From positions 5,321,946 to 5,385,945 of the forward strand of contig BFEA01000010.1 in NCBI GenBank assembly GCA_003427395.1: DNA of 64,000 nucleotides, given 5' to 3'. This document shows, piece after piece, positions 4,810-33,817 of the stretch (the stretch's first letter is position 1; each line of letters starts with the position of its first letter). The notes under the pieces were generated by a model. The model was given only the letters and a program-made list of their open reading frames with translations. It searched no databases and was not told the DNA's origin. This stretch comes from Chara braunii. Lineage: Eukaryota; Plantae; Charophyceae. The position numbers were made by a program, and so were the translations under genes.

Positions 4810-4854
<45 letters not shown>

Positions 4855-5258: not shown

Positions 5259-5557
5259 TTCGAGTAGCGTCTTAACCACCGTGCAATTTACAGTGTGGTG
5301 GAAACGCCATCGTAGTTATATCAAAGCCTATTTGGAGTGATCGGTTTCTCCCCGCCAGGACACGTGTCACTATTTCTCCTGCTTTTGGGTGTTTTCGTCT
5401 TTTTCTTTTCTATCTATCGATTCTTTCTCTTTCTATGTCAGCACCTCATCCTCTTCCCGCTCCCCCTTCCCAACAGACGACCGTGCAAGGATCGCAACCG
5501 CCAATACTGCAAGCTCCAGCGGCGACGTCATCAAACACAATTGCTCCTACGACATCA

Positions 5558-7019: not shown

Positions 7020-7022
7020 TGA

Positions 7023-10002: not shown

Positions 10003-10500
10003 CATGGTCTGTTAGGAGGTTAGGGATACAATTTTGACAAAAGGCTAGCGCGACGTGGTCTAACACGCAGCACCAGAGGACAAGACTTTACGAACGACAG
10101 GGGACTTACGAACAAAATGATGCCACAGGATATCACACTGGCATATAAAATCCCGTATCATGAATGCCAATAAAGATCCTGCATGCGCCGTCTTCGGTCC
10201 GACTTGGGTACCAGCACGTGCGCTGCTCCACCATTTTCACCATACACGAGTTCTGTAGGATACCTGTGGCATCTACCTCATACCCCCACTCGCAATCTCC
10301 CTCCTCGACCATGGCATCTGCTCTGAGTTCTCTCTTTCCGCCATTATTTTCCGCCTTACCTTTTCCTTCAGTCTGTCTGCCTACCTTCTCCCCTGTTGCT
10401 ACCTCGGGTGTCTTCCCGCCCGAACTATGGCAACTACACGACTACCATTCTGACCTTCCCATTCTCGCTGATGATCTATGTTCCGCTTTCTCTCTCTCTT

Positions 10501-10556
<56 letters not shown>

Positions 10557-10954
10557 GCCCACTCTCTCTCTGACGTACAGACACACACGAAACCCCCCAT
10601 TTTTTTTCCGTTATGAGATGTTGGTTGGATACTCAGATCTATATATGACGGGGGTAAGAGGACTAGGTAGCGCAATTCCCCTTATGATGGCTGCGACGGC
10701 GATGCAACCGGAACATGTCGGGAACTCTCGCTGTGTTGCTCTTGGTTTTTACGATTTATGTTAACGGAGCAAACTTTTTCTTGCGCTACCCAGGTGTCAT
10801 TTCTTCTTCCTTATCTTCAACTATCCATTCGCCTCCCCTTCTCTCCATCACTACATTCGCCCTTGCTCATCGTGTGTCTCTGTGCTATGGCGATTCTCTT
10901 CCTCATAATGGCTTTGGAGCTTTGAGTCGTAGCTTTAAGACTCACATTTCGCTC
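9821..10954 (+). repeat. PLE-A 3' pseudo-LTR
   Basis: Diverged direct repeat of 4147-5258. Confidence 0.93.
10676..10724 (+). ncRNA. Hammerhead ribozyme, degenerate copy
   Basis: TTCCC-CTTATGA-TGGCTGCGACGGCGATGCAACC-GGAAC-ATGTC-GGGAA: core substitutions (CTT for CTG, GGAA for GAAA), palindromic stem III ACATGT, GUC triplet. Confidence 0.75.
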
Positions 10955-11197
10955 CACTGGCGCACACACACACACACACAGGTAAGATTGTATATTTCCA
11001 TGTTCTAGTGGAAGATTCATTCGATTTTGCTTTTTTTTTCGTTCATTGATTGCTTGCTTGCTTGCTTGATTGATTGGTGGGGGCGGGGTCGCCCCCCCAC
11101 CCCCCACAGGCGCACATACACACACACACACGCAGTATTGTATATTTCCATGTTCTAGTGGAAGATTCATTCGATTTTTTTTTAATTTTTTTTTCCG

Positions 11198-11274
<77 letters not shown>

Positions 11275-11374
11275 GTGGTGGGAGGAGGGGTCGCCCCACC
11301 CCCCCGCCACCCAGCACGCGCCGGCACACACACACACACACACACACTTAGCTGTTCTTTTTTTTTTTTTTCCT
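10955..11374. repeat. Compound tandem repeat of ~150-210 bp made of (CA)n, a unique core, T-runs, (GATT)n and a G/C box
   Basis: ATTGTATATTTCCATGTTCTAGTGGAAGATTCATTCGATTTT occurs at about 10987 and 11137. TTTTCCGTT(GATT)n also occurs at about 4099-4132, on the other side of PLE-A. Confidence 0.8.
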
Positions 11375-12821
11375 NNNNNNNNNNNNNNNNNNNNNNNNNN
11401 NNNNNNNNNNNNNNNNNNNNNNNNNNNNNNNNNNNNNNNNNNNNNNNNNNNNNNNNNNNNNNNNNNNNNNNNNNNNNNNNNNNNNNNNNNNNNNNNNNNN
11501 NNNNNNNNNNNNNNNNNNNNNNNNNNNNNNNNNNNNNNNNNNNNNNNNNNNNNNNNNNNNNNNNNNNNNNNNNNNNNNNNNNNNNNNNNNNNNNNNNNNN
11601 NNNNNNNNNNNNNNNNNNNNNNNNNNNNNNNNNNNNNNNNNNNNNNNNNNNNNNNNNNNNNNNNNNNNNNNNNNNNNNNNNNNNNNNNNNNNNNNNNNNN
11701 NNNNNNNNNNNNNNNNNNNNNNNNNNNNNNNNNNNNNNNNNNNNNNNNNNNNNNNNNNNNNNNNNNNNNNNNNNNNNNNNNNNNNNNNNNNNNNNNNNNN
11801 NNNNNNNNNNNNNNNNNNNNNNNNNNNNNNNNNNCAAAATAAAAAAATAAATATGCTCTCACAAAAAACAAAACCGAAATGACACCACCAAAACATGGCG
11901 CCACTGCACCATACACCAAAACAAAGCTAAAACAGCCCAAAAACAAAACAAAAAAAAAAAAAAAAAAAAAAAAAAAAGCACTAACAACTACCCTGTACAC
12001 ATACAGAAACGAGCACCAGAAACCTTTTCGAAAACGTGCCTCACGCTGCACGGGCGTAATGCTAAAAGACAAAGCATTCGCACCTGCTGCACAACCTCAG
12101 CAATGCCGCCGAAACTCTCCGCACCACCATACCTACACTCGATGACAAATCACTGAGCACTACAAAACATGCAAGCCACCTACATGCCCGCATGCTGACA
12201 GACACAACATACACCACTGCGCACTACCAAACGAGCAACACAAGCCTCACACCCAGGTGTTGCCACATACGACGTCTCTCCCACACAACACACCAAATGC
12301 CCTTTACTCCCACACCATAGCCGCGTACTGCAATACCCGTCTATCCCACAAAAAATTAACCACCCATACAAACATCCCCCCTACACATGAGTCCACGTTC
12401 ATCATTCCTATCCCCCCATAACCCCATGCCTAACCACTCACCCCTCGCTGTCCCATGGGGATCCTTGGAGCTGGTTACATGCCAGCTTGATCCCACGCAT
12501 GGAGTCATGCAGAAACTACCACCTCTGCCCCAGCATCCACATCCATATATCACATCAACCGACACATACCCTCCCTCTTGCTACTCTCTACAATCCCTCC
12601 TGTCTCTGAAGCAGTGCATTTGCGTGGTTCACTATCCACCTTAGACTGCTGATCGGTGTTGACAATTGCGCTGCACATAGGATCGCCATAGCTGGTGCTC
12701 CCTGCACCACCTACGGTGAACGGTGTGCCTGTAGTCGATAGCAAGAATTCACCCGGTGGTGCATTGTCTCTACGGAAATTCTACCCTGCGACTACCAGCG
12801 GCAATTCCAAAGTCTTGTACG

Positions 12822-13178
12822 ATGGCGCAGATCAGGGAGAACCTCCCCGACGCTGACATCATGGAACACATGGTAAGTTTTTTGCTCCTGAGCTAAAACT
12901 TTAGCCCGTTCCCGCATGACCTCTTCCCTCACCACCCTTTTGGGAGCCAGAGGATATTCACCCTCTTATGAGCCGTGACTGGCGCAAGCGGCGAAAAGCG
13001 CTTTAGGGGATGCGCCCCCCTCCTCCACCAGCATTTATGCTGGCGTTGATGGCATTGACCATCTTGCTCCCTTCCTCCTTCTTTCCTACCCCCCCTTCTA
13101 CCCCATTGCGCAATAAGGTGCTTATTGTTGTTGCCACAGGTGCGTACATGGATTACTGACCCCGACTTCTGCGACAAG
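12822..13178 (+). CDS. Putative first two coding exons of PLE-B ORF1 (12822-12872 MAQIRENLPDADIMEHM; 13140-13178 VRTWITDPDFCDK)
   Basis: ATG...ATG|GTAAGT donor, TTGTTGCCACAG| acceptor and AAG|GTATGT donor. Both exons are phase 0 and preserved in the 3' repeat. Confidence 0.55.
12961..13009 (+). ncRNA. Hammerhead ribozyme in PLE-B 5' repeat (core G-to-T)
   Basis: CCCT-CTTATGA-GCCG(13 nt)CGGC-GAAAAGCGCTTT-A-GGGG, with palindromic stem III AAAGCGCTTT. Confidence 0.75.
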
Positions 13179-15729
13179 GTATGTGCTCCGATTGCTCACA
13201 GACTCTATGGTTTATCTATGGCTGTTGGAGATTCCCATATATGGGTTGCTATGGTTGCATTTTGCACTTCGACACACGCATACTATCGGACACTGTCCTG
13301 TCGCAATGCAGGGGTTAAGCCCACCTGCTGATCTCCACCCACTTGCCTAAGATACATACCTTCTCTCTGTGACGTGATCGGAGACATACAGTTCGTTAAT
13401 GGTGGTCTCCTCTTCCTGTAAGCCATACTGGCTCATGATTGCATATGCGTACAATATCACCTGCCCTCCCACCAACCCCCTCCACCTCCATACATACTCA
13501 ATCCACGCATATGCCCGCCCGCCTGCCCCCTCCATCCACCTAACTATATGAGCCACTTATGCAGCCCACTCCCATGTAAGTAACCAATCCCGCATAATCC
13601 CACCTCCCAACCAAACCTACCTATCATTCCAAATAACCTTAAATACGCCCATCCACCTCATCCTCGCGCCCTACCCCTCTAATGTAAAGCCACTCCACAA
13701 CTGACTATGCTCGAAAACGCCATGCCACAATATCTACACGACCAATACGAACAAATCCCGAATCATCACAACCATGACCACGATAGTTATGGATAAACCG
13801 ATGGAACCCTTTCGTATAAACTCATAGAATATCTGCACACACATGAAAAACCAAATGATAAACTCGCAACCCCCGAAACACTAAACCCAAACTCCACCGT
13901 AGTTTTGGCTGACATAAACATTCAAAGATAAATTTAATTAGGCACTTTACTTTTTATCTTTCTTCCTTACGAACTCGCTAATACATGCTGCCCTTATTAT
14001 ATCTCTGTTATTTAAGCACATCACCTCAGCTTCCCACAGTAAGTCGACTGCGCTCTTTGATCAAGGCATGCTTGATATAATCTATTATTCCTTTTTGCCG
14101 ATACACTGCACGCAACAAATCGATCATGCCGCAACTAGCCTAAATCCTTACCCTATCATCGCACGTCTATCTCAAATCCTGTTGTCACCATCCCTTCATC
14201 TGCTCTATCCTGGAACGTAGTTATAGCAACGCTGTATGTAGGAGTGATCATCATTTTATCGCCCATTGCAAATCGATGCCTGCTTACATCATGGTTGGGA
14301 ACGACCCTTCACTGGCCCATCCGGATCCTGATCCTGTCATCACTTTGAATGGGTAGCCTGGTATATTCTATCACTTTGATTATGCCGGTAAGTGCCGGTC
14401 AGTATGACTCGTACTATCTGATACTCTCACTCTGATCCGCATATGAAGGAATGTATTCTTCCTTGACCTTCTTCGCAATCAAGAGTACTCTGACTTAAAA
14501 TCCCTGTTCCTTTATTCAGCACGTTCTACCCACACCCCCTCTCTCCTTCCTTCCACCCCTTCCCCCACCAATATCCTGCTCAAACTTAAACCCCCCTGAA
14601 GTGCGTGATGCCTAGACGCTATAATCCCTCTTCCTACATCCAAATCTTCACGCCCCACGGGATGGGTGTCAGGCTCCCAGTTGCTAGAATTTATATACAT
14701 GTCCATATCCGGTATCCTGAAACTCCCATATATATCTCCCTACTTCGTATGCCCATAAATTCCCCTGTGCACCCACCAAAATACCAACCTCGATCCAATT
14801 ACCACTATATGAGATCGGGCAACCTACGAATTTAACATACACATAACTTCATCTTCTTAAATGCTTCCAAAACAACCCCCATGCTTATGATTAGACTTTT
14901 TTTCCGAGCACATGCAATCCCCTGGTATTGAATACCCCCATTCTGTAATTACTATGCCTCTGACCTCACAACCGCGTCACATACTATACCCATTATACAA
15001 AGATTTAACCAGCCATGCTGACTATCTGACCTTGTTTCCTCTCTGTATAGATATATACATATATACAAATGTACATACTACTATATGCACATATATATAT
15101 ATACGATCTTTTAGGTTCCCGCCTGACCACCTCCTGTGCAGACAAAAAACCATTGACCTTTAGCCATGAACTCCTTTCCCGCTTCCCCAACCCGACCTAT
15201 ATTGAAGTACTATACTAAACAGAAATATATATATACATATATTTACATATATATATAGACATAGGTTCTCTCTTTATATATATATAAGGGCATGGAACCT
15301 ACATATCGGACTCACCATCTTAATAAACGCTCTCCCCGGCTCTTCGTTTCCTATCTTCAGCTTTGCAAAAACAAGAACGCTAATTCAGACATCTTGCTAA
15401 CGACACTTTATTCTCGACTATGTCCCGGTCAATCTGCTTGCACTGAACGCTCTGTTTTTCATGTCATTTGCAACACTCTTACTTTACTCATCTCTCCAAT
15501 TTTCATTTCTTCGAAGCAAGGGGCTTCGGTTCTGTGGTGGTATCATAGAAAATTTCAGCCTACAATTTGGTCTGTAGCCACTCCAGACGCCAACCTATGA
15601 GAACTATTACTGTCTCCCACCCTGCACCCACATACATAACCCTATAGGTAAGCAGTTCGAAACAAAGGGATGCTCTTTGTTAAAAGAAAAACTCACTCTC
15701 TCCTTCATACCTTTCCACTCTCCAATATT

Positions 15730-15799
<70 letters not shown>

Positions 15800-15800
15800 C

Positions 15801-15843
<43 letters not shown>

Positions 15844-16529
15844 GATATTGTTACAACCCCTCGTTTGTTGTCCTCTTCCCTTTCTCTGCCTACGGTTTAC
15901 CGGACAGTTCTGTTGTGACGATATATATCTATAAAGTTGCATATCATCCTTTAGAAGTCCAATGCAACATTTCTCTCGCTAATCATGTTTTGTGATAACA
16001 GAAGTTGCTGCTAACATATGCACAGGGTATATTGCGAATCCTGGGTTAAAAAAATATATTCGACACTGTGCAATTTCTTCAATTTTTTACCAAGCTATTG
16101 CGCACATACACACGCACTAAGATCGAATTTGTGAAAATCCTAGGAAAGGTTAGCCCCCCTTCTCATGAATTTTTTCTGCACTAGCTCTCTCCTCATCTCT
16201 CTCTCGCGCTCTCTCTCTTTCTCTCGCCGCACTTTCGCGCTCCAACGCTCCTTGTCACCATACTCCCCTATCCCTACCAATCCCTCACCCCCTCCCCCNC
16301 CCCCCCTCTCTCATTCTTTAGAATTTTCCCCCTTCCCCTTCGGTCTTACTACCCCATCTCTTTTACCTCGATTGTCCCCCCTCGTCCCGCTCACACCAAG
16401 ATCAAATATGAGCATATTCATGGCCAAGACAGCCTCCTTGTTATAAGATTGCTCCGTATCATGAAAATACTCTATCTATGACAGTCTTACTCTTCTTCTC
16501 TCCTTTTTTAGCACTGCGTCCCCACACAC

Positions 16530-16567
16530 CTGTCTCTTATACACATCTAGATGTGTATAAGAGACTG
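16530..16567. other. Nextera mate-pair junction adapter (two Tn5 mosaic ends); assembly artifact
   Basis: CTGTCTCTTATACACATCT+AGATGTGTATAAGAGAC(T)G, one mismatch to the known junction adapter, ~30 bp from an N-gap. Confidence 0.97.
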
Positions 16568-17190
16568 GTCCACCTCTGCGATTGCAACTGATTAGCTTNN
16601 NNNNNNNNNNNNNNNNNNNNNNNNNNNNNNNNNNNNNNNNNNNNNNNNNNNNNNNNNNNNNNNNNNNNNNCTCTCTCTCTCCCTCCCTCTCTCTCTCCCC
16701 CTCTTCCTCGCCCCCCTGCTTAAAACCTGCCCCCTGTCTACCCTGACTCCTTCCCCCTACTCAAACAACTGCACCATGCCACATTTAATGATCCTAGGAT
16801 TACCAATCACCAAAACAACACCCCATGCTAACAAACTACAAAAAAAACATCGCCCATACCACTATCGCGAAACAATACGGACTCCTTTGAGATGGATTGA
16901 CCACCGAATATGAACAAACTACTCAAAGCGTTCAATATTGTATGGTTTACAAACAGAAAAAACCACAACCGCAGATACGCATGATCCATAATATAAACCC
17001 CTCATACACCACCTTCACACACCAAACGTCACTATACATGGTAAGATATGCCCTCTCTGCTCTCGATCAACGAAACATGTATTGCTAAAGACTAGTCCCC
17101 TCATGTACTGCAGAAATATTTTGCGCAAAGCACTTGGTACCACGATCCACTGATTACCTTGCATGAAAGCATAAACAGAGATCGCTACCG

Positions 17191-17724
17191 CTAATAACCC
17201 TCGTACTCCTTAATTTCGCCCCATAAACCCGGACGTGCGAGGGGATCTCCGACCGAGACGCCCCATCCGGCCGTCGGCACAATATTTCTCCCATGCTCTA
17301 CCGCCAGTGCAGTCACCAAAGCTCTCAAAATATGGAGCAATACATCCCGCCCATCTTCAGGAGGATCAATAGGAATCTCCGCGCCAATTCGACGCAGGAA
17401 GAAACGCAGAGAAACTAAAGCTCCACGTAGGTAAGCGACGTAGGTCCCCACACGAAGTACCATCTGACCGTTCAGGTTAATATCATAAGAACGCGTCATC
17501 GACCGACGTTCTGGAGATGCCTCCCAGGGCTCCACACCAATCGGAGAATCACGAAGATGCACGCGCTCCAAAATCAGGATCGTATTCTCCGACACGACGC
17601 CATGGTAAACCACGGTAAACTCCATCCTCCTGCTCCTCCTGGTGGAAGTCACCCACACCCGTCCAATCATCATAAGACCAACACCAATATGACTGCCTCC
17701 CGCTTCCACCCACTCCACAACCAA
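17191..17724 (-). CDS. Antisense ORF of unknown function inside PLE-B (up to 177 aa; ATG-initiated forms are shorter)
   Basis: Uninterrupted ORF with globular-looking composition in a GC-richer island; no family recognised. Confidence 0.5.
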   Translation of the reverse strand: MVVEWVEAGGSHIGVGLMMIGRVWVTSTRRSRRMEFTVVYHGVVSENTILILERVHLRDSPIGVEPWEASPERRSMTRSYDINLNGQMVLRVGTYVAYLRGALVSLRFFLRRIGAEIPIDPPEDGRDVLLHILRALVTALAVEHGRNIVPTAGWGVSVGDPLARPGLWGEIKEYEGY

Positions 17725-18539
17725 TAATAGAAGAAATCAACCCCCCAGCGTAACCTCCTACCGAGAGAATCTAGAACCTCATGCGCACAACAACAAGCTC
17801 TGGTACACACTATCAGAGTATCCAACACAAAAACATACTACGCAAATCTTGCAACATCCTGCACAGCAGCCCAAAGAAAATCCCTACTCTTTTTATATTG
17901 TTACTGTAACCGCGCATGCCAGAAAACAGTTCCTGAAGTCTAACACCAACCGCAATTTTTTCTAGTTGAACTCCGAACCAAACTAGGAAATGTATGAATA
18001 ACTAAAACAAAGCAAACCATAAAAACCTAACCTATAAACTACCACAAAATGCACGCGCATGCGACGCAACCATCCACGCATATACGGGTTCCTCCCCCAC
18101 CCCTTCCACACCCTTTAACCCAAAATGGCCACCACGAATGTCTAATGATTCTAATCCCGAACGATGAAACACAAAAAATAATTCCTTTCAAATATTTGCG
18201 CTATTTCATAATTTAAATTTAAGACACAAAATTAAAACAAAAATAAATAAATAAATAAATAATAAAAAATAAAAAATATAAAATTAAAAATTAAAAATTA
18301 AAACCAAAAATAAAAAAATAAAAAAATAAAAAATAAAAAATAATATTAAAATATAGATATATAAAAATATATATATCAAATATAAAATAAAAATATAAAA
18401 TATAAAATATAAAATATAAAATATAAAATGTAGATATAAATCATCCTTTTTAAAAAAAAAATAAAATAAAAATAAAAAATAAAAAATATATGTATAAAAA
18501 AAATAAAATAAAAAATTACCCTATGGTTATGATGCCGCT

Positions 18540-19640
18540 ACGATACGCAGATAGCGAGCGACTGCACAGGAATAACTGTCATTCATCTATCCCTTACCTG
18601 AGCTCGCCATGGGGAATGACGTAGACAATGGGAGAATGGAGCGTGGGCGCGATGAGATGGCGGCCGCTCCGAAGGGGCACAACAATACACCTGCCATAGC
18701 CTGTTCTTGACCAACGACAACTTAGTAAATTCCTTGAGAGGAACGGGAGAGATATGGGGACGACCAATAGGCAAAACTGCGCACCGTACATATCAGAATT
18801 GTCACCCGATTAGGGGTTTTGCTCATTGATTATAGATACATAACACTGTTGTGTTACGACAACGGACGTAACCCTATCTGAGTGAAGAAATGGAGACGAA
18901 CGAGGTGAGTACATCCATAAGCATCGACTCCCGGGAAAATAGATGATAGACTTCTCGCTGCATTTTAGCATTACCAGAGCTGTCGAAAAAATACCGACAC
19001 AAGGCTTCAACCTTGACCTGGGCCTACCCACTCTAGCCAAGACCCATACGTCGGACGTAGTGTTGCTCGCGCCTTCCTACCCTTTAGACCTTTGATGCAG
19101 TATATTATAACACTATTAAGAGAAGAATGGGCGAATTGAAACTTTGTTATGCCGTTTGCGATTCGCTGCTTTCCGGCGAGAACGTTAAATAGGTGGGTCA
19201 CGGTTTTTCGTGGAACTGGGTTCTCATCTTGATGATGGTCGTCGATGCATTGCCACAATTTGGTACCTGGTGATAATGATTTGTGTGGTTGGATTTAAAA
19301 TACAAGTACACTAGATTTCGTTATTTTGGTGTTACGCCTACTCATCAGTGCCCGAACAGAGGTGGATAGGGTTTGAAAAGTAGATAGGTTTCTGAGAAGC
19401 TTACGTGTTTAATCATGTATATTTTCTGATTAGCCCTGGCCTAGTTAGAGGAATCAACGGCTGAATCATTTTTTTAATTGGCTGGACGCTCGTCTTTCGA
19501 TTGGTTGAGTATTCCATCGAAACTAGGATGGTGATTGAAATAGAGCTTAGCGCACTGATCCGCTGCGACTGGATAGCTCTGGCTGGGTGTGCCTCACCCA
19601 ACCTCGTCTGGCCGCGGATTTTGATGAAAGCGACGCACAA
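18540..19640 (-). pseudogene. Decayed antisense coding-like island inside PLE-B
   Basis: Balanced-composition island flanked by extreme A-rich spacers. One minus-strand frame reads as protein-like with scattered stops (…CAKLYFNHHPSFDGIL…WQCIDDHHQDENPVPRKTVTHLFNVL…). Confidence 0.35.
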
Positions 19641-20620
19641 CCCTGTTTTCGGTCATAAAAAATATAAATTTAAAAATAATCTTAAAATAATCTCGGCTCA
19701 ACTAAGAATGAATCCCCTCTCAGCCCCTCTCCCCCCAAAATAGCAGAATTAGATACTCTTCCTTCATACGGATCCTGCTATACTACATACTCCCTTTAGA
19801 CAACCCAATAATGCAAGGATCTTCTTAATTTGAAAGTTGGATAAAGCAATAATAATAATAAAAATAACAATAAAAAATATTTAAAATATAAACTCACAAT
19901 TCTCATATCCTTTTTAATTTATACTTATACAAAAACCAATTTACTTCACAAAGAAATAATACGTACGATAAAAAATGCCTGCCAATTTTATAATTACCCC
20001 GAACATCACGACACTAACAAGTAGAACCAAAAAATACATGAACAGCCACGATTCAATAGGCCAATATAATCCCTAAGTATCCTAGTTACTAACAATAGGG
20101 ATCGCAGACCCAACAAACATTTTTCTGTCAATACAACAACACACACATAACTAAGCCCAAGCTGCACATAACACTGCATCAACCTGAACCTGCTCCTTAG
20201 TCAGACCTAGCACTATAGATTCCTCCCAACTGCTAACCTTTACTATAGCAAATCTCCCTCCAAGAATGTCCTCACAATAAGATCCCATAACACGGAAACT
20301 TAAGAAACACAAGACCTATGAGCTATCCAACCCCCTGAAAAAACCATCCCTACCAACACCGATTAACGATTACCCCCACATACAAAATAAAACAACAATA
20401 ACAACACAACAGACTACACATGAATAAGTAATTTTTTAATACGCCATATTAACATTAAACCAGTAACTCGCCTTTTAATTAAAATCTCTCCAAAACCCCT
20501 GACCAATCAAAAACCACCCCCTTCTACACAAACATCACATCCTAACCCACACGTTTGTCCATACCCCCTTTTTTTTTAAGAAAAAACACCATGTACTAAC
20601 AATGCGCTCTAATCCGTCAC

Positions 20621-23450
20621 ATGCAAGATGAATCAGAAGCCAACAAGGGATGGCATCACGAGCTGGCTGAGAAAGCCCAGTTGTTCATCCACCTCACACC
20701 CCTAAGCGTGCATTCGCAGACTGCCATGCTAGCCCTCCCGGAGCAAGTACTTAATCAAGTACATGAAACCAGCAACGCGCAAGCCCCCTTCCTCATTGAG
20801 AACCTGCACTTCTCAGATTGGGCGATCATTGTTGCCAAGTGGCAAACACTCAGAGGAGAGGAGGGACCCATCATTCAAACTTATGTCAAGGACATTGTCG
20901 CCATTCTCAAGCAAGCAGCACTGCAGAACCGGGAAATGGACAAGATCGTCGCAAAAACGGAGAAGGTCATCCTTGACTTGTATGGCTTCAGCTCTGTGCA
21001 TCTGAATGCCACAGGTGATGTCAACACCACTGACAACACTGACGAGCACAGACTACAAGTCATCGCACACCTCAACCCTTCACAAGCCGAAAAAGATTGG
21101 TATTTGAAGAGGCGGGCGGAGCGACAGCAACAAGCAGCCCAGCCTGCTGTCGCCACGCCCACCCCACGCAAAACCAACTTCTTCAGAATGGCGTCAGATG
21201 CACCATTCATACCAGTCCAAACACCCAGGTGGATTGAAAGCATCAGCAACAGATATGACAACAGGCTCTGGATGGTTGACTCCTTCAATCACACTGCCCC
21301 CATCACCATCCAAGCATATGCATCATTGGCTAACCTGTCGGAAGCGGATCTTGCCGAATGCAGAGAAGAGGCCCAAAAAGCCATCATCCGCAGAACAGCA
21401 ATCGACTCCAACTTCCCGATCCTCGGACCTCTTGACAGCTCCAAATGTCCCAACTGCCACCCACTGCTCCACCAGAAGGCGGTGCAGAAGCCTACTGCCG
21501 AGCTCCATGAGTTCAAGAAACTATGGAACTCCGGTAGACCTTATCTGAAGTGCAATTGCCCCATGCATGGAGGTGTGATCACATGGTTTGATCACATGCT
21601 ATGGTTCTACATAGCAAACCTCGATATCTTTGAGGCTGATGTTCCCCCTGATATGATGAGGATGATGGAACTTACTGACAAACTGCAGAATGAATGGAAA
21701 AAACCTGTTAAGCTGCAAGTCACCTTCCTCTACATGCGCATGCACATGATGAACCTGACGCATCTGCTGGTTGCTAACCCTCAATCCACCACTAACCAAC
21801 TTGCGGATAGAGAACCATACAGGGAAATGCCGCTGGCCAAGAAATTCTTGGCTACTCTGCTGCCTGCTGCACACCAAACCCAAGACCCTCCACCTTCACT
21901 CACCAAGCGCAAGAACCACCCAACACCTGACATCATCCAATGCAGTCGCAACAGGCAACCCACCAACACGCTCACCACCCCAACCCATGTCCCTTCACAC
22001 ACACCCATACAACCAATAGCCCACATTGAACCCACCCATGCACCTGCAAACTCCGCCCTCCCTAACAACACGCACACTCACCATGCTGCACAACCGCCAC
22101 CACTGACTGCACAACCACAACATACTACCCCTACCATTGCACGCACACCCTCCCACCCAATGCCCAGCATAGCACTGCACAATACATGAAGAGCAAAAAG
22201 AAACAACACTGCCCAAACCACAAAAAGATTGCAAAAGGGCAGATGGCAGAAACGCAAGGAAAAGCTCATGGCAGCAAGAAGGGCGCAGCTGCAACAGCAG
22301 CCAAACAACGCACAGCAAGCCCCGCATCAGCCACCTCTCCAAACCACCAACCTGCGCAGCACAAATGCACAGCAACCAAATCAACACGAACACCTGCAAG
22401 CATCGCACCCACAACCCCGCAACTCCCAACAGCCCACTGCACTGACAACACGCGATCCTCAGCAACCCATCAGCTCACAGCCTCAAACATCACAGCATAA
22501 TCTGCAGGCCCAATAGTTCCTGCAAACTGTTCTTGCAACAGCACAGCAACTCCCCGCACCTGCACCCGCCAACACCCGATCTTCACCGGCACCCGCACTG
22601 TCACAGAACGTACCACGGTCCACAAGCTGGCTTCCCCCCATCCACCAATTCCTCGCACACCACGCCCAACAACAGGCAAATCGATCAACATCCCCCCCTC
22701 CGCAAGGTTCCCGGCGTCACAACCCCATTGTCCTTGGTTCCCCATCCCCTGACAAACCCCCCAGAGCGCACAACGACATCAGTTTACTTCTCCAGCAGTA
22801 TGATGTCGAGTGCTCGCTAATTGATGCAAACCTTGACGACAGCTACTCGACTAACGTAGTCTAGGAAACCCCTGCGCCACAAACCACTAACAAAAACACC
22901 AGGAGGAACCTTGTCAGCGACTACAGCTGCAACCCACTGTCACTCACTGATCTCTGAATCTACGCAGATACCCATCGCTCATGACATGGCTTTGCGGCTC
23001 TGAGAGACTATATAAGACGTCATGGCCAATACCCAGGAGGACAACCCTCTTCCACGATTGCATGGGATGCGAGTGTGCCGACAATACAGACCTGGCGACT
23101 ACAGGAGCAGCAGCAACAAGAAAAAGAGACCTCCAACCAGCAAGCACTCCCAAGACCCACAGAAGATCCTACTGAATGACCAAGGGGCCTGCTACCACTG
23201 CAATGCCTTTTAAAGATTCAGTAACCTCCAGACTTCAGGCGATGATTCAGTCTAGCAACATAGCTCAACAAGCACAGCCTCGTTGCAAGCTAAGCTAGCC
23301 CCCACTCCAAGTACGAACATGTTTAGCAAGTTCCAGGATAAGAATAGCTCACATGCCAGCTATGGTCTGACTCGACTGTTCCTCTCGGTCATCCCTGAGC
23401 AAGCAGAAGTCTCCCTCTTAGACCAGAAAGTGCATGACGGTATTCGGTAG
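20621..23450 (+). pseudogene. PLE-B ORF1 body: 522-aa open segment with CPNC/CNCPMH motifs, followed by a Pro/Thr/Gln-rich linker and a stop-disrupted continuation
   Basis: ORF 20621-22189; 22229-22516 is in the same frame. A TACTAAC branch point lies at 20594, and a further acceptor TACGCAG| at ~22967. Confidence 0.65.
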
Positions 23451-25098
23451 GATAAACTTCAACCCCTGAACTCTTACACCTCCCCAATTTCTTATTTATT
23501 ATCATCATTATTTTTAATAATTATTCAGCTGGTTCCATGTAATAATCGCCTCCGTGTAAAATTCTACCACTTGATTGGCCAAATCTCAACTGGTTCTTCA
23601 GAAATCGGCAGACTGAATCCCAAATCTGACTTCACCCTGAAGAAGCTTCTGGCCCCAAAATAAAACGTGGAAACTCCGCCCCGAATGTTGCTTGAGTTTT
23701 AAATAAATATACAAGGACCATGGTTCGACAGATGGCCCAGGCGCCCGAACAGAAGGATATTCATCTCTGATCTGTGTCATATTGAATGATATCCGTATGT
23801 TTATTTTTACTTTTTATTTTATTAATTTTTCGTGTACTCGCATGCTAACCTCCCTGCCCTTTGCCTGAATGTGCTCATTAGCAGAGAACACCCTTCATAT
23901 AACCCCCCACTCTACACAGTGAAGTCCTCATACCCCGGCCTCCATGCTCCTTCCAGCAATAGACGTCTCCCAGACCTTCCTGACTCTAATGCTCTCCCGA
24001 ACGCCCTCTGTCACCCTTCCACCACACCTCTTCCTCAACCATCCCTGCATACACTCTGTAGAAGTATCCCCAACCACACACTCGCACACACATCTTCCTA
24101 TGCCATAAATCCGTCCATCGGCCTCAGCCGGGAACCTGAAAATTACGTGCCTACATTCTTACATATCCATCCATTGCCCCCCTCACCAACTGCAAACTAA
24201 ACATAGCTATCACTACATAACAGCAATATCCCTAGGCTACCATTAGATAATAAAATAAGTAGATCATTACAATAATGCTGATACCTAGGAACAACCACAC
24301 CACTACACCATCTACCTACTATTCGAGGTCTGAGCAAGGAAAGTCAGTCCCTGATAATAGACTACGGAGTGAGGAATGGAATAGAATAGAGGGTGTGACC
24401 TTGAATGTACTTATCCATTTGATAACTGTTTATGTTAAGACATCTGCTTTCCTGACAATTGCCAATAGTAGCTCCTGAATCCCTTTCTTAAGACTAAAGC
24501 TGATTGTTTCAGAAGACCTTATGGCCAACTAGGATAGCCACCGACATGTACGAAGTAGACCTTTTTCACTCACCTTTTTCCTCTCTCCTGCTCCTCCCCT
24601 CTTGCCAAAAACAACACATGACCCCAAATGCCCCACCTACATTCCATATCCTTCTTACCTCCTCCCACCCAACCAACCGTTTATTCACGACTGTACAACC
24701 CCACCCTTGTTCCTCCTTCTAAACCCCCCCCATGCATAAAGCTGGCGCAAACCATCTCTACGGCACCTCTCCTTCCCAGCAATCCCCCCACCCCGCAAGC
24801 CTTTAACTTGCCAAACTTTTTCTACCAAGAAATCTCTCTGCACATTCTTACTGCCTCAACCCCTTGCTCTACGCACACCCTTCGACCTTTCCTCTTGCCT
24901 ACTCAATGGACCCTGCCCTCTATCTAATGTTTGTTCCTGCGCACACACTCCCTCTGAAAAAAAAAAACCAGAAGAACCCCCCTCCCCCACAATCAGTAAT
25001 TGAATTCCTGTACAGCACCAATAAAAACAACCATATACACAGGCATTAATGGGTTACATAAAAAACCTAGCAACTAACCCCGAAACTTTTGCATGCAG

Positions 25099-27246
25099 GT
25101 ACCCCACTGAAGACTCCAACGTCTACCACATGGACGACTTGGCTGACGCAATCACAAGGAACAAACCAAACACATAATACATCTGCACTACCATAACAGG
25201 CTCTTTGAAGGAATCAAACCAAGAACACTATTCCAAACACTCATCAAAAAACACATTCCTCAAACACTTAACTCTCTCGATCATTTCACGTTTGGATGGA
25301 CATATGACAATCACATGGCACGAGCACTATACAAACCAGCAACAGTTTTTCATAACTTTGAACTAAATAAATGGTATGAAGAACAAAAGGACAAGTGTTA
25401 CTGCCAACAGCACCGGTTTGAACAATTTACCAAGACCGCAGCCGAAGGACTCATGCCAGATCATATGCCCCCACATGTCATCACCATGAACATGGGTATC
25501 TTCACAAACCCCCAACTCAGGACGATGATTGAAGCAGGAATGAACCACATACCCCCAACACAAAACAACCCTCAATCAATCCACCATGAACGCCACCGAG
25601 CATGGGACGAAGTAATAAAAAAACTCAGATCAGAACATGCAATCCAGCAACAACAAGTAGACGCGGCCACACGAGAATTACATGAGATTTTAACAAACAA
25701 TCTAAAACGATTCCCAAAGAACAACGCTACTAGTATACACAACCATGCCATACACAAACAAATAGAATATATGACCCACAACTTCTACATAACCGGAGTT
25801 GATAAAGCACCCAACACACCCACTGTCTGCTGCATAAATCTACTCAGATTCCTGGCGCTTCAACGCCTCTCAGGACCAGACTTCACACCCACTCAACAAA
25901 GAAAAGGTGAACTCATATACTTCCTCACTCAAAAACTCACTACACGTTTTTCAATGATTCCCATTGGCAAACCAGATATGCCCTACCTCTTCGCCACATA
26001 CAAGAACCACAAAAACAACTTCCGATGGCTTACAAATGCTGCTGACGTACTCCTCTCACCACTTGCAGATGCATGCTCTAAAATCCTAAAAAAACTTCAA
26101 GAACCCATCCAAGAACACTGTGGATAGCTCACTGAACTCACATTGCAAAAAACAGGACACACAGTACCATTCTGGTGGATAATTGATTCCATAGCAGACT
26201 ACATATATAATATCCCCAACAAGGTACACAACCTATTTACAGCCGACATAATCCGCTGTTATGAAATCATCACCATAGACCAATCACCAGATGGACTACC
26301 CAATGTCATACGCTTCTTCGTCAAACTGACATCTACTGCTGCCAAAAAAACATACGGCACCAATGCTACACTACACTATGCATACAGAACAAATCAAGAG
26401 CCACACACAATAGAATGCTCATGGTCTGCACACCCTGACCAAACCAAAACTAAATTTTCAGCCAAAGACATAATACAAATGAACACATGGCTTGTCAACA
26501 ACGCTCACACATCGCTTGGGGATCACACATGGAGACAAACCCTTGGCATACCCATGGGTGTTAGCTGCTCCCCCATATGGTGCAACCTGTACTTCTTCAT
26601 GTTCGAATATAAATTTATGAAGAAACTCACACACAACAGAAACCAGCACCTCCTACCACTCTTTGCCCACACTTTTAGATACTTTGATGACCTACATACA
26701 ATCAATAACAACCAAATCACAAAATTCCCGAACCCAAACATCACAAGCCCCAGAAGCACATACTATATATACCCACTAAAATATGTAACAATAAACGACC
26801 AAACAACATACACCCCCACCATAGGTCACGAACCCATTGGAACAGAATGCAACTTCCTAAATGTAACCATCAAAGTCACCAATGCGCAAGAAGTACTATA
26901 CTCCACCCACAAATTCGATAAAAAAAACCTTCTCAACTTCAATATCACCAGACTCCTCAAATACAACTCAAACAAACCAATAATGCAATCAATAAAAATA
27001 TTAATCCCACAAATAGTCACTATAATGACTATTGAAAATAACAGCATGAATGCAGCCACACAAATTCTCAAACTAATAGACATAATGACTCAAAATGACT
27101 TTCCATCAAGCAGATGCCTGTGCCTAACAATTGACATCCTAAAACATCATGATCAATACCAACCATTCAGATGCTCAACTCAACAAACACTTGATCTCTT
27201 AAATGAACAAATTAGTCAACAACGTGTGTGTGGCCAGTCAAACTGA
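25099..27246 (+). pseudogene. PLE-B reverse transcriptase (Naiad/Chlamys-type); one internal TAG at 26125; no GIY-YIG seen
   Basis: CYC...HVIT...NPQLR...G.NH.P, VDKAPN, PYLFATYKNHK, FRWLT, ADIIRCY, QTLGIPMGVSCSP, RYFDD, FLN. ORFs starting at 25315 and 26143 share a frame. Acceptor TTTTGCATGCAG| at 25098. Confidence 0.92.
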
Positions 27247-27659
27247 CTGGCTGGTACGGATGGAGTACCTTAACCCATGAGAGGGACAAGTTCACCATCC
27301 GCACTTGATCCCCCTCATGACCCCCATCACGTGGGAACGAGGGAGGGACACACACACACACACACACACATACACAAATATACACACACACACACACACT
27401 CATACTTTTTTTATCCCCTCTTCTTCTCATCACCATACAAACCACCCTCCCAAAAAAATAATAATAATCATACACCTTCACACACACACACATAAGCACT
27501 GTCCTACAGATAAACGTATAAAAAAATAAACACACCTTCATGCATGTACATAACTGACCCTGCACATATATATAACCCCCCAAAAAAAAAGAAGCGTGTC
27601 ACGTACCCTCGGCGCATAGCCGACTATTGTACCCCACATATGCGAATTGCAACAGCCTA

Positions 27660-29105
27660 CAAAATAAAAAAAATTAATATGCTCTCACAAAAAACAAAAC
27701 CAAAACGACACCACCAAAACATGGCGCCACTGCACCATACACCAAAACAAAGCTACCATGATTCAAAAACAAAAACAAAAATAATAAAAAAAAGAAGAGA
27801 GAAACACTAACAACAACCCTGTACACATACCGAAAAGAGCACCCAAAACCTTTTCGAAAACGTGCCTCACGCTGCACGGGCATAATGCTAAAAGACAAAG
27901 CATTCGCACCTGCTGCACAACCTCGGCAATGCCGCCGAAACTCTCCGCACCACCATACCTATACTCGATGATAAATCACTGAGCACTACAAAATATGCAA
28001 GCCACCTACATGCCCGCACGCTGGCAGACACAACATACACCACTACGCACTACCAAACGAGCAACACAAGCCTCACACCCGGGTGCTGCCGCGTACGACG
28101 TCTCTTCCACACAACACACCAAATGCCCTTTACCCCCACACCATAGCCGCCTACTGCAATACCCGTCTATCCCACAAAAACTTAACCAGCCATACAAACA
28201 TCCCCCCCACACATTAGTCCATGTTCATCATTCCTATCCCCCCATAACCCCATGCCTAACCACTCACCCCTCGCTGTCCCATGGGGATCCTTGGAGCTGG
28301 TTACATGCCAGCTTGATTCCACGCATGGAGTCATGCAGAAACTACCACCCCTGCCCCAGCATCCACATCCATATATCACATCAACCCACACATACCCTCC
28401 CTCTTGCTACTCTTTACAATCCCTCCTGTCTCTGAAGCAGTGCATTTGCGTGGTTCACTATCCACCTTAGCCTGCTGATCAGTGTTGACAATTGCGTTGC
28501 ACATAGGATCGCCATAGCTGGTGCTCCCTGCACCACCTACGGTGAACGGTGTGCCTCTAGTCGGCAACAACAATTCACCCGGCGGTGCATTGTCTCTGCA
28601 AAAATTCTACCCTGCGACTACCAGCGGCAATTCCAAGGTCTTGTACGATGGCGCAGATCAGGGAGAACCTCCTCGACGCTGACATCATGGAACACATGGT
28701 AAGTTTTTTGCTCCTGAGCAAAAACTTTAGCCCGTTCCCACATGACCTCTTCCCTCACCACCCTTTTGGGAGCCAGAGGATATTCACCCTCTGATGAGCC
28801 GTGACTGGCGCAAGCGGCGAAAAACGCTTTAGGGGATGCGCCCCCCTCCTCCACCAACATTTATGCTGGCGTTGATGGCATTGACCATCTTGCTCCCTTC
28901 CTCCTTCGTTCCTACCCCCTCTTCTACCCCATTGCGCAATAAGGTGCTTGTTGTTGTTGCCACAGGTGCGTACATGGATTACTGACCCCGACTTCTCCGA
29001 CAAGGTATGTGCTCCGATTGCTCACAGACTCTATGGTTTATCTATGGCTGTTGGAGATTCCCATATATGGTTTGCTATGGTTGCATTTTGCACTTCGACA
29101 CACAC
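27660..29105 (+). repeat. PLE-B 3' pseudo-LTR ending in (CA)n
   Basis: Direct repeat of 11835-13275; probably extends further left, where the matching 5' sequence is hidden by the gap. Confidence 0.95.
28787..28835 (+). ncRNA. Minimal type I hammerhead ribozyme, core intact
   Basis: CCCT-CTGATGA-GCCG(TGACTGGCGCAAG)CGGC-GAAAAACGCTTT-A-GGGG. Confidence 0.85.
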
Positions 29106-29106
29106 A

Positions 29107-29142
<36 letters not shown>

Positions 29143-29579
29143 CAAAAACAAATATCAAAAGGCCCCGGAAAAAATATATATATATTTTTTCCATTCGTTG
29201 ATTGTTTCCTTAGGACAAAAAAAAAACAACAAAAAAAAACGTAAAAATGCAGAATACAAAGAACTGCCAACCAACCCCCCCCCCCACAAAAAAACTTTTT
29301 TTGTAATTTCTTTTTNNNNNNNNNNNNNNNNNNNTATTTTTTATAATTCAAAAAAATTATATGTTTCCAAAAAAAAAAAAAAAGGCGATGTTGAGATTAA
29401 AAATCCCTACAACCCCATATATATATATATATATTTTTACCCATTATTTAATTCAGGAAAAATGTGGTAAATTCATGTGACGAGGTCGGTCGCGAAGTCG
29501 CAGACGCGGCCGTATATACGGCCGCCCTCCGAGCTCGACCCTGCAGACGCTTCCGCGGGTGTTTCATAACATTTGGCAG

Positions 29580-29675
29580 ATCCTTTCAAGCCTATTCTAC
29601 GACGCCGCTGATGACGTCAACAACTCCCCGAAGTACCAGCCGATCTCGGACAATGCCGTACGCTTCAAGCACCAG
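29580..29675 (+). CDS. Possible isolated 96-nt phase-0 exon (ILSSLFYDAADDVNNSPKYQPISDNAVRFKHQ)
   Basis: TTTGGCAG| acceptor, CAG|GTGTGT donor, open frame, C-ending codons. Protein not recognised. Confidence 0.3.
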
Positions 29676-30799
29676 GTGTGTCTCTCGTATCACTCACAAC
29701 CTCGTTCCCCAACTCACAGATGCCACATGCACCCAAGGACCACCATGCGCCCCATCCAGCGTACAGCAACGCAGCTCGGCTATGGTTGCCTGCTCCTTCC
29801 AGCTCGCCCGTGAGCGCTTGAGCCTGACCAGCGTTAGCGCAGCATGCAGCCAGTGCCCGAATGTGCAATGCGTAGGCAAACCCTTCTCTATATCGAAGTG
29901 GCCTGCTGTTGCATGCGGTATGGTACTGGGCCTTGACCCAGAAGCTTCTGGTAGGGCCCACGAGGCTGACCCTCTGTCCGAAGAAAACAGGCCCAGGGCC
30001 TGTGGTGGTTACCAGCACCCAACCGCCCTCAGCCTTTGTTCGGTCCACTTTGTATATCAGGCCCAGGACCTGCCTCAGTTACATGCAATGAAAGGCAGTC
30101 TGAGCCTGGGCACTTCCAACCAACTGGCGCTGCGCAACTGCCTGAATTTCCCCAGTTGCGTGGTGACCCCAAAATGACCTGTAGGCCTCGGTCGTGCCTG
30201 CCTTCACTTAGGGCAACCAACTGTGTGGAAAATAGGCCATGTAGGGCATATCGAGGCCCTGTGCCTCACAAATTGGTGGTCGAAGTTTACAATTGACGAT
30301 TTTGTTCTGTACTCATATAACCATCTAAATTAGTCTTCAGATTACATCTGGTAAATTTTCTGACCTACTTTCTGTCTCAAATTCCCAAAGAACAATTCTA
30401 GTTGGGCATTTTGATTCGTAAAGTTTTTATACTTGCTTGCAGGAAATTCATAAGTATACTCTGATGTTGATTTTCAAAAAACCCATCGAAAGTCCTATTT
30501 GGATATCCTATTCGTAAATGCTAATAATAATTCATATACATTTTCTAAATTTCACCGTAGATCAATTTTCTAAATTGTCATGATTCTATTTTCTAATTTG
30601 TCATGATTCGATTTTCTAATTTGTCAATGATTCGTGATGAATTCTGCCTAGTCTAATGATCTTGGTTACTTTGATGATTTTGTTTTAAAAACTTTCAAAC
30701 TTTGACGTGATTTTCCATGTTCCAATTAGTGTTTTCCGATAAGGCTTCTCTCATTGGAGACTGATAGCAAATCTTCTTAGGTGTGCATGTTGCTGTTAT

Positions 30800-32460: not shown

Positions 32461-32628
32461 ACAGTGTTGGACAGTTTTAGAGAGTTTTGTTTGGGAGTCT
32501 AGGGGTTCTGAGCATTGGAAAAGAGGTGGGTCGTCATTCATAGTTTTTTAACCTCTCCTTTAATTCTCTTGAATTTCTTCAATAGTTCTCAGATTGATTC
32601 TCAGCCGAAGCCAGGTAATGGCCCCGGN

Positions 32629-32721
32629 TTCTTCTTCTTCTTCTTCTTCTTCTTCTTCTTCTTCTTCTTCTTCTTCTTCTTCTTCTTCTTCTTCTTCTTC
32701 TTCTCCTTCTTCTTCTTCTTC
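32629..32721. repeat. (TTC)n microsatellite
   Basis: Directly visible. Confidence 0.95.
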
Positions 32722-32959
32722 TTTGTCTTATCAACACCGTCGACTGAGATCAACCCTTCCCTTATCTTCGTTATCTATATTAGGACGGCGGCAGGCTCGT
32801 TCATTCTCCCCACCTCCTGGTCCCCCTTCCTCTCGGCGTCGTATTGATCCTAAACTGCCTTGTTCATTGTCTGACCGACAACCTGCTTTGGTACGTCGAC
32901 GACGTTCTTCAATTAAATGCCGACCACGCGAAATTAGACCAGGCCTTCCAGTGGTGACT

Positions 32960-33817
32960 GATTCGGATTTGCGAGCAGATCTACCAAACATTTGTGGCCT
33001 GACAGCCACGAATGTTTGTCTGCAACCTTATCAGCGTCAAGGTTATACTGTATCTCAATTTCTCACAATTGCTTATCAGCGTGACGCTGTTGAAAATGAG
33101 TTGTTGTATGACTGTAATGGTCTACCTCCTGAGGATAGTAATTATACTACCACAGGAGGCTTTACTATAAATGTCTTACAGTCAGCATTTCACGGTCGCC
33201 ACCTTCTCATGCCTTATGGGACGCCAGGCGAGGACCTTAATGCCCGTCCTCATATTTCTGCATGCATTTTGCACAAACCCGGGCACTATATGGCAGTCAT
33301 TCGTGCAGCTGCCCAGTGGGAACTGTGGGATGGTAGGACGGTGATTCATGTTATTGTCAACATAAATGAATTCTTGCGAGGTTTGTCGAATCATACACTG
33401 TTCTGGATTGTTGGGCGTCACTCGTGCGACATTTGTTGAGATAGAAATGTGGTGCCTCTTGGTTGTGGATTGCATTATCTATGTCAGCACCATTATCAAT
33501 CCATCGCGACTGCCGCCGTATGTGTGGAAGGGTGTCTAACATTTCCTCATTGTGCACATCCCTATCATCCAGATGTACGTTGTCATTTCTGTTCCCAAAT
33601 ACGCTATCAGAACTGCATGATGTCGCACTGTGACGAACGTCCTGCTGTTTTCTTGACATGTGGGCAACATGTCCTCTGTCGGGATTGTTTCGATGGGATG
33701 GTTCGTGCTAGCCGTCAGGCTGAATGCTGTACTAGTGCAACTCTCCTTGGGTATCCCTGTGAACATCCCCGTCATCCTCACCGTCGTTGTCCTATCTACC
33801 GAGGGGGTGACAGATAA
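32960..33817 (+). pseudogene. Josephin-like deubiquitinase domain fused to two RING-like zinc fingers; one in-frame TGA at 33437
   Basis: NICGLTATNVCLQ…YTVSQFLTIAYQRDAVE…SNYTTTGGFTINVLQSAF…SACILHKPGHYMAVIRAAAQWELWD…FLRGL parallels ataxin-3 SLCAQHCLNNLLQ…FSPVELSSIAHQLDEEE…GNMDDSGFFSIQVISNAL…SFICNYKEHWFTVRKLGKQWFNLN…FLAQL. It continues with CDIC…CGLHYLCQHH…CHFC and C..HC…CGQHVLCRDC…CPIY. Confidence 0.75.

Follow-up and report, generated by a model that had tools for sequence, protein, structure and literature searches.

A probable single large, inactive Penelope-like element of the endonuclease-less Chlamys type in Chara braunii

In a 64,000-nucleotide stretch of the Chara braunii genome (contig BFEA01000010.1, positions 5,321,946 to 5,385,945; hereafter the window, to whose numbering all positions refer) we encountered what, on sequence comparison, is likely to be one old and inactive copy of an endonuclease-less Chlamys-type Penelope-like element (PLE), extending from about 11325 (visible from 11835) to 29106. 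The element is a member of the "third type" (PLE-X-like) of the three Chlamys types already described from C. braunii by Craig et al. 2021 (PMC8557442), which is characterised there by a CxC motif, the lack of a GIY-YIG endonuclease, an N-terminal extension presumably set off by an intron, canonical hammerhead ribozymes and genome-wide dispersal. From left to right the element comprises a pseudo-long terminal repeat (pseudo-LTR) that starts at a (CA)n run and carries a mini-exon and a minimal hammerhead, a 5' region of ~7.7 kb with a divergent conserved open reading frame (ORF), and ORF1; these are followed by a spacer, the reverse transcriptase (RT) ORF, an internal (CA)n run and the other pseudo-LTR, which is shorter and terminates in the (CA)n target. 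Eleven related loci, nine from C. braunii scaffolds and two from environmental contigs, were fetched for comparison and are referred to by L numbers. The features are as follows.

11325-11346, plus strand: (CA)n run left of a 460-N gap, probable start of the 5' pseudo-LTR; the run is low-complexity and the placement only suggestive.
11835-13280, plus strand: visible part of the 5' pseudo-LTR, 94.95% identical to 27660-29106, beginning where the gap ends.
12822-12872, plus strand: putative mini-exon 1, ATG and 17 codons followed by the donor GTAAGT; second copy at 28648-28698.
12961-13008, plus strand: hammerhead, 5' copy, with a G to U change in the core (CUuAUGA).
13281-13345, plus strand: element sequence past the repeat end, from the match of window 12808-13345 to L009 (reverse complement) 10303-10814 (E 9e-39).
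16530-16598, no strand: assembly artefact, a mate-pair ring adapter (16530-16567) and 31 nt, followed by an N gap (16599-16670).
17191-17724, minus strand: conserved antisense ORF of 177 aa, within an open stretch of 181 codons (17191-17736).
20594-20627, plus strand: branch-point-like TACTAAC (20594-20600) and ORF1 acceptor position, where CAG reads CAA; an in-frame ATG is present.
20621-22963, plus strand: ORF1, open for 522 codons to 22189, the frame running on to a conserved stop near 22961.
22187, 22514 and 22862, plus strand: stops within the continued ORF1 frame.
22964-25098, plus strand: non-conserved spacer or intron before the RT, ending in the acceptor-like TTTTGCATGCAG; about one copy in DNA contigs.
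25099-27246, plus strand: RT ORF, with CxC at 25396-25404, DKA at 25801-25809, YFDD at 26680-26691 and stops at 25108, 25144 and 26125.
27349-27398, plus strand: internal (CA)n run just past the RT, the presumed start of the 3' pseudo-LTR by comparison with related elements.
27660-29106, plus strand: alignable part of the 3' pseudo-LTR, its end lying within a short ACACAC that leads into the flanking (CA)n run at 29111-29138.
28787-28834, plus strand: hammerhead, 3' copy, core intact, with the helix III palindrome AAGCGCUU changed to AAaCGCUU; predicted cleavage after 28830.

Self-comparison of the window gives, within this stretch, one long direct repeat, the pair formed by the two pseudo-LTRs, which aligns over 1446 nt with a period of 15,826 nt, 73 mismatches (49 of which are transitions) and one gap column; the 3' copy is the shorter. 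Direct repeats in this arrangement are also present in L001, L002, L005, L007 and L008, and in five families of related elements both pseudo-LTR copies begin at a (CA)n run located just after the RT. The left repeat starts at the first base after the run of 460 Ns (11375-11834), which hides its true start. We place this start at the (CA)n run at 11325-11346 because the run and its (GATT)n/G-rich flank match the relatives, the flank recurring ahead of the 5' pseudo-LTR in L002 and L008; ~300 nt of the repeat are then probably hidden in the gap. A (GATT)n/G-rich/C-rich motif precedes (CA)n at three independent loci (window 10954-11346, L002 ~5890-5952 and L008 ~3495-3554) and occurs twice in the window, at 10954-11076 and 11104-11232. 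Possible explanations are a favoured target site, a tail or a portion of some other repeat. At the other end, the segment just after the RT stop (27290-27399) shares 82-90% identity with the corresponding position of two L001 elements, whereas the RT coding sequence matches these elements at a much lower 64-71% at the nucleotide level; the segment overlaps the internal (CA)n, and part of its match may be low-complexity. An unrelated repeat (29369-29568) follows the 3' pseudo-LTR after a gap of 19 Ns; it is found twice in L006 as well (7627-7823, inside the RT of the L006 element, and 12678-12738).

The assignment to the third Chlamys type rests on the two sense ORFs, whose nearest proteins are all from C. 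braunii. An exhaustive profile-free search with the C-terminal piece of the RT returned 2035 relatives, 279 of them at E<=1e-10, the best being annotated C. braunii proteins at ~35% identity, and when ORF1 alone was searched every match was a C. braunii protein, at 36-40% identity. Several C. braunii relatives match 20621-22189 with their N-terminal part and the RT with their C-terminal part; the N-terminal extension of GBG83558 and of other proteins is homologous to ORF1 (E 7e-39). The order ORF1, RT, hammerhead is common to all of the related elements. In addition to the motifs listed above the RT contains YKNHK..RWLTN, and its CxC (CYC) aligns with CAC, CPC or CQC in relatives. The Pfam RVT_1 match is weak (E 0.002), as it is in the relatives, and a comparison of the RT with solved structures gave no match. 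No Pfam match to GIY-YIG was obtained with any of the element ORFs tried, nor with the uninterrupted relatives of 680-780 aa that were scanned, and the endonuclease of a neighbouring PLE found no tblastn match in the present element; as a positive control, Pfam detects GIY-YIG in that neighbour at 7113-8138.

ORF1 as it now stands open (20621-22189) is a shortened version of an ancestral frame of ~780 codons that reached to about 22963. Past the stop at 22187 the frame encodes a basic low-complexity linker and then a conserved C-terminal block (22691-22951), which is 60% identical to L009 and is found also in L008, L001, L010 and L006. ORF1 has its own CxC motif (CNC, 21551-21559). The third cysteine of CxCX1-8C is absent here and in the relative P0011, and is present in L004 and in the relative P0002. 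An earlier note on this DNA had described two ~1.45-kb direct repeats, a long ORF1 and a PLE RT adjoining the 3' repeat, and had taken the whole as a very large Naiad/Chlamys-type PLE of the green lineage. The repeats, both ORFs (the RT with three in-frame stops), the Chlamys affinity and the large size are borne out, the last by the repeat period and by the large units in L008 and L009 described below. The endonuclease implied by a Naiad/Chlamys assignment is not found, and the element falls instead into the endonuclease-less type.

The same note took the element to be autonomous, which is untenable for the present copy: its coding frames contain six in-frame stops (22187, 22514, 22862, 25108, 25144 and 26125) without a frameshift, each hammerhead has a lesion, and subsamples of three oligo-dT RNA-seq runs yielded 0, 2 and 0 reads on 20600-26599 and no splice joints. 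The presence of the organism in these runs was not checkable on another stretch, so the read counts are not evidence of silence. Over the 4.5 kb of coding sequence, every one of the six disabling changes has produced a TGA or TAG nonsense codon; together with the two-thirds proportion of transitions between the pseudo-LTRs, such a pattern would be expected if a silenced repeat had decayed by deamination-type changes, with which it is compatible. DNA contigs from a 2018 run point to several copies at >=95% identity (that is, at least 95%) over ORF1 and RT and to about one copy over 22400-25000. Loose ends of these contigs at 25285/25291 were considered as possible intron-less copies and were rejected, as they are diverged paralogues. 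The plus strand shows a nearly continuous excess of C over G from 12000 to 30000 (skew -0.2 to -0.6), interrupted only at 18500-19500; the same bias is seen in related L001 elements, but not in L002 or in L001(iii).

The interpretation of the window as one unit depends on what lies between the left repeat and ORF1. The closest relative found, L009 (55% amino-acid identity in ORF1 and 54% in RT), is gap-free from its (CA)n run to beyond the RT. Nucleotide homology to L009 takes in the mini-exon and the hammerhead, crosses the repeat end at 13280 and extends 65 nt past it; element DNA therefore continues to the right of the 5' repeat. The homology resumes in ORF1, in one block of the ORF1-RT spacer and in the RT. 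The landmarks of L009 follow the same order as in the window: (CA)n, mini-exon, hammerhead, junction block, 4.9 kb, antisense ORF, ORF1, C-terminal block and RT. The distance from hammerhead to ORF1 is 6.3 kb in L009 and 7.7 kb in the window. L008 has pseudo-LTRs of 4.7 kb, a period of 13.5 kb and a span of 18.2 kb, and a large unit in this subclade (a 13.5-kb period in L008 and at least 13.9 kb in L009) appears to be new. The environmental contig L004 (6632 nt) has a 55-nt exact repeat with a period of 6418 nt, and a pattern search found no hammerhead core in it.

The stretch between the repeats is broken by an assembly artefact. The 38 nt at 16530-16567 consist of CTGTCTCTTATACACATCT joined to its own reverse complement with one mismatch, and correspond to a ring adapter used for circularising mate-pair fragments (PMC7357533). 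With this adapter embedded in it, the end of the left contig is a chimeric read, and 16530-16598 does not belong to the locus; the 31 nt that come after the adapter (16568-16598) are found nowhere else in the window. The adjoining gap contains 72 Ns and is crossed by no open frame. The same adapter lies beside an N gap in the C. braunii scaffold L001 (52395-52437), and chimeric contig ends of this kind, adjoining N gaps, may be frequent in the assembly.

It is possible in principle that two separate insertions are juxtaposed here, the left repeat being a solo or truncated copy and ORF1, RT and the right repeat a 5'-truncated copy, with unrelated DNA or a misjoin between them. The left repeat does begin at a gap, and the interval between the repeats contains another gap, with an adapter chimera; no homology to relatives is detectable in 13346-17190, the 5% divergence of the repeats equals the spread among other genomic copies, and PLEs are often truncated and nested (PMC8557442). 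We nevertheless regard this explanation as unlikely. The homology to L009 extends 65 nt beyond the repeat end, and L009, which has no gap, shares the landmarks, their order and similar spacing. The antisense ORF to the right of the assembly gap is a component of the family that lies upstream of ORF1 at five loci, and the two repeats are oriented alike and bordered by (CA)n, as in the relatives. The 5' repeat, which the earlier note had taken to belong to the element, is thus most likely its own pseudo-LTR and not an independent insertion, on the strength of the L009 homology across 13280 and the same order of landmarks.

A closer contender, to which we give somewhat less than an even chance, is that there is indeed one element but that later nested insertions (for example 13346-16188 and 18527-19720) have inflated it, the ancestral unit having been nearer to the ~13-14 kb of L009 and L008. 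The antisense ORF is 2.9 kb from ORF1 here, as opposed to 0.9-2.3 kb in relatives; 18500-19500, the only stretch with positive GC skew, follows an A-rich tract; a CT-rich match suggests ~2.8 kb extra relative to L009; and the ORF1-RT spacer is 2.1 kb, compared with 1.2 kb in L009, and is at about single-copy depth in the DNA contigs. On the other side, the candidate stretches yielded neither a repeat or terminal repeat nor coding similarity to another transposon, and the CT-rich match to L009 consists of low-complexity sequence.

Several observations count against the preferred interpretation, a single element with the layout given above. Similarity of 13346-17190 to L009 does not rise above that of a reversed-sequence control, and the membership of this segment rests on the landmarks that flank it; part of it, or 18527-19720, may be nested insertions. 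The join across 16530-16670 meets a contig end formed by an adapter chimera and is no more than plausible, on comparative evidence. L009 is cut off just after the RT and shows no 3' pseudo-LTR, and no single relative combines the antisense ORF with both pseudo-LTRs. The antisense ORF of the window is only ~23% identical to its relatives, even though ORF1 is 55% identical to that of L009. Rfam reports no hammerhead, either at the gathering score or at E<=10, and no read supports any splice (0, 2 and 0 reads in the RNA subsamples). A collinear chain of weak tblastx matches between 13346-17190 and L009 was rejected, since the reversed-sequence control scored equally. Overall, a single old element remains the preferred interpretation.

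The antisense ORF appears, from the comparison of loci, to be a conserved gene of the element, located just upstream of ORF1 on the opposite strand, and as such appears to be new. Its open length of 181 codons is reached by 0.2% of Markov shuffles (p ~0.002). It has no Pfam match, no match to an Atlas feature and no homologue within the length range allowed by a word-based search. It does match an ORF just upstream of the PLE in L001 (pairwise E 1e-11), which belongs to a dispersed C. braunii family, and the profile of this family aligns to the window ORF by hhalign with a probability of 95.8% (E 8e-9, 139 columns). At five loci representing at least four diverged families the ORF adjoins a PLE ORF1 on the opposite strand, at distances of 0.9 kb (L009), 1.7 kb (L001), 2.3 kb (L010), 2.3 kb (L011) and 2.9 kb (window). 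L009, L010 and L011 were fetched through the antisense protein alone, and all three carry a PLE ORF1 on the opposite strand; an RT is also present in L009 and L010, while L011 runs into a gap after ORF1. Among L010, L011, L001 and L009 the divergence of the antisense protein roughly tracks that of ORF1 (identities of 85/90, 55/66 and 35-37/37-38%).

The ORF could instead belong to another mobile element or to a host gene family near which PLEs tend to land. In the annotation of L001 it forms part of a DUF659 gene model, L005 has a fragment at a distance from the mapped element, no copy was detected in L008, L006, L002 or L007, and the window copy is far more diverged than the window ORF1. This explanation is unlikely given that at the five loci the ORF keeps the same side, the opposite orientation and a spacing of 0.9-2.9 kb, that in L010, L011, L001 and L009 its divergence roughly follows that of ORF1, and that in L009 it sits between the hammerhead-bearing pseudo-LTR and ORF1. 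Several antisense coding islands had been proposed in the earlier note. One of these, the ORF considered here as a gene of the element, is supported at five loci, but the other antisense ORFs (14512-14706 and 18594-19640) have no Pfam match. Two AlphaFold models of the antisense protein had pLDDT values of 56 and 66 and gave no significant match. In a search of the ESM Atlas the top rows were almost all GNAT acetyltransferases (TM 0.44-0.48), and an all-against-all search of the PDB likewise gave mostly GNAT proteins, with Z up to 5.2, within background. A conserved PGxGVD motif precedes a long helix; in the GNAT fold the acetyl-CoA loop (Q/R-x-x-G-x-G/A) stands ahead of helix 3. A GNAT-like fold is no more than a lead from these searches. 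Foldseek against the PDB gave nothing significant for this ORF, and weak rows for Tdp2 were rejected.

The putative ribozyme in the pseudo-LTRs was found by eye and corresponds to a minimal type-I hammerhead, CCCU-CUGAUGA-GCCG...CGGC-GAAA-A-GCGC-UU-U/AGGG (the slash marks the cleavage site), with a helix I of 4 bp and a helix III of 2 bp closing a 4-nt loop; AAGCGCUU is self-complementary. A self-complementary loop of this kind is a hallmark of minimal PLE hammerheads that act as dimers. The same motif is present in the pseudo-LTRs of all nine other copies compared (seven C. braunii loci), elements which otherwise share almost no nucleotide similarity with the window outside the coding regions. 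Helix II covaries among the copies (GCCG with CGGC, GCCAUCC with GGAUGGC, GCCCCA with UGGGGC), and RNAalifold gives for one helix II pair GC in five, CG in three and AU in one. Helix I is invariant and hence uninformative on covariation, and the basal pair of helix II is C-A or A-A in some relatives. A hammerhead in each repeat, as first proposed, stands to the extent that the motif occurs in both and is kept in the nine other copies, but each copy has one lesion and Rfam is silent.

Splice signals, also pointed out in the earlier note, are present and are conserved across families of relatives. The mini-exon lies ~92 nt upstream of the hammerhead and ends in CACATG/GTAAGT. In L009 it has the same length, start context and donor, and 8 of its 17 residues are identical to those of the window. 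Conservation of the ATGGC start, with a GT donor lying 90-130 nt ahead of the hammerhead, extends to L009, L006, L001(i) and L001(iii); in the last three the start reads ATGGCG and a GT donor follows at the matching place. ORF1 starts without an ATG in L009, L010, L006 and L008, at TTGCAG/, GTGCAG/ or CTACAG/ (YAG/G), where the window reads ATGCAAG; CTAAC is found 25-40 nt upstream of this acceptor in the relatives, and in two of the four there are stops just upstream. In the public annotation of L006 a partial coding sequence begins exactly after the CAG of the ORF1 acceptor. The RT frame opens at a polypyrimidine tract and CAG/GT in all seven RT copies examined (six loci), and a methionine eight codons past this acceptor is kept in most families and is absent in the window. 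The mini-exon, the ORF1 exon and the RT exon are all in phase 0, and one 5' exon could therefore join either ORF; this layout rests on exons examined one at a time. A second putative exon in the pseudo-LTR (13137-13175) was rejected, as it is not conserved as coding sequence in L009.

The proposal of a spliced gene in which ORF1 and RT are fused is not supported, because ORF1 ends at a conserved stop, which occupies the same position in the window, L009 and L008 (three families). In the uninterrupted environmental relative L004, ORF1 (534 aa) and RT (679 aa) are separate ORFs 160 nt apart.

Taken together, these features suggest a scheme for how intact relatives might work. Transcription would start in the upstream pseudo-LTR, and the 17-codon mini-exon would supply the ATG and be spliced in phase 0 to the acceptor of either ORF1 or RT. 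Unspliced RNA would be cut by the hammerheads of both pseudo-LTRs to give a template of unit length. Integration would favour (CA)n through microhomology, a route proposed because no endonuclease is encoded; how endonuclease-less Chlamys elements spread genome-wide is regarded as an open question (PMC8557442). The present copy can perform none of these steps by itself. More tentatively, and with rather more doubt than confidence, we propose that a subclade of the endonuclease-less Chlamys PLEs of Chara follows a three-gene, retrovirus-like plan with an alternatively spliced shared mini-exon, in which the hammerhead and a divergent, possibly GNAT-like, co-evolving gene lie within a first intron of 6-8 kb. 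If this is true, splicing and self-cleavage would compete, deciding between messenger and template RNA.

Representatives of the two remaining Chlamys types are also present in the window. A second, different PLE occupies 4149-10954, with direct repeats at 4149-5258 and 9827-10954 (87%), an upstream ORF, a fragmented RT, an N-terminal GIY-YIG domain (7113-8138, Pfam E 5e-4) and a minimal hammerhead with an ACGT loop (4985-5017). These features agree with the second Chlamys type in Craig et al., which has an upstream ORF and a 3' hammerhead (PMC8557442). Further downstream, the ORF at 32594-33439 encodes a Josephin domain (Pfam E 4.5e-5) and is probably transposon-borne, not a host deubiquitinase, because the first Chlamys type of C. 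braunii carries a Josephin-like C-terminal extension (PMC8557442).

Comparison with known systems places the element closest to the third Chlamys type as it occurs in C. braunii and Selaginella (the PLE-X1_sTam type). Shared features are a CxC before the RT, the lack of GIY-YIG, an upstream ORF1 or N-terminal extension with a CxC cluster, a hammerhead in the pseudo-LTR and an association with (CA)n (PMC8557442). The described elements measure 3.3-8.2 kb without pseudo-LTRs, in contrast to an interior of 14.4 kb here, and have CxCX1-8C, of which the present copy lacks the third cysteine (PMC8557442). An intron was inferred between their extension and the RT, whereas here ORF1 has a conserved stop and acceptors open both ORFs (PMC8557442). 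The sections of Craig et al. on this type mention no antisense ORF, in contrast to the conserved one found here, and relative to those sections the mini-exon and donor ahead of the hammerhead and the conserved phase-0 acceptors that open ORF1 and RT also appear to be new (PMC8557442). Naiad and Chlamys PLEs with an N-terminal endonuclease differ in possessing the N-terminal GIY-YIG that is lacking here and that is present in the neighbour at 4149-10954.

The expected start of transcription in the pseudo-LTR, and a 5'-leader intron spanning the border between pseudo-LTR and body, are features in common with Penelope of Drosophila virilis and Chlamys-3_cRei of Chlamydomonas (PMC8557442). The introns of these two elements are 75-751 bp long and lie in an untranslated leader, whereas the putative first intron here is ~7.7 kb, follows a coding mini-exon and contains the hammerhead and the antisense gene; both elements moreover encode an endonuclease, unlike the present one, which has no GIY-YIG. 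The ribozyme resembles the minimal dimeric hammerheads of PLEs and retrozymes in its type-I layout and in the 2-bp helix III closing a 4-nt palindromic loop. It differs from them in being unmatched by any Rfam hammerhead model, in its invariant 4-bp helix I, and in the C-A or A-A pairs that sometimes occur at the helix II base in relatives.

The Athena elements and Terminons of bdelloid rotifers likewise lack an endonuclease, carry a hammerhead, are very large and contain additional ORFs. In contrast to these, the window contains no telomeric repeats ((CCCTAAA)n, (TTTAGGG)n or (ACACCC)n) of two or more units, the element sits within a scaffold among other transposon copies and not at a scaffold end, by protein matches its RT groups with Chlamys-type Chara proteins and not with rotifer elements, and only one extra ORF is verified. 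PLE units of 13-16 kb exist outside rotifers, and the antisense gene, the layout of mini-exon, donor and acceptors, and the hammerhead within the putative first intron provide testable handles on their expression and cargo.

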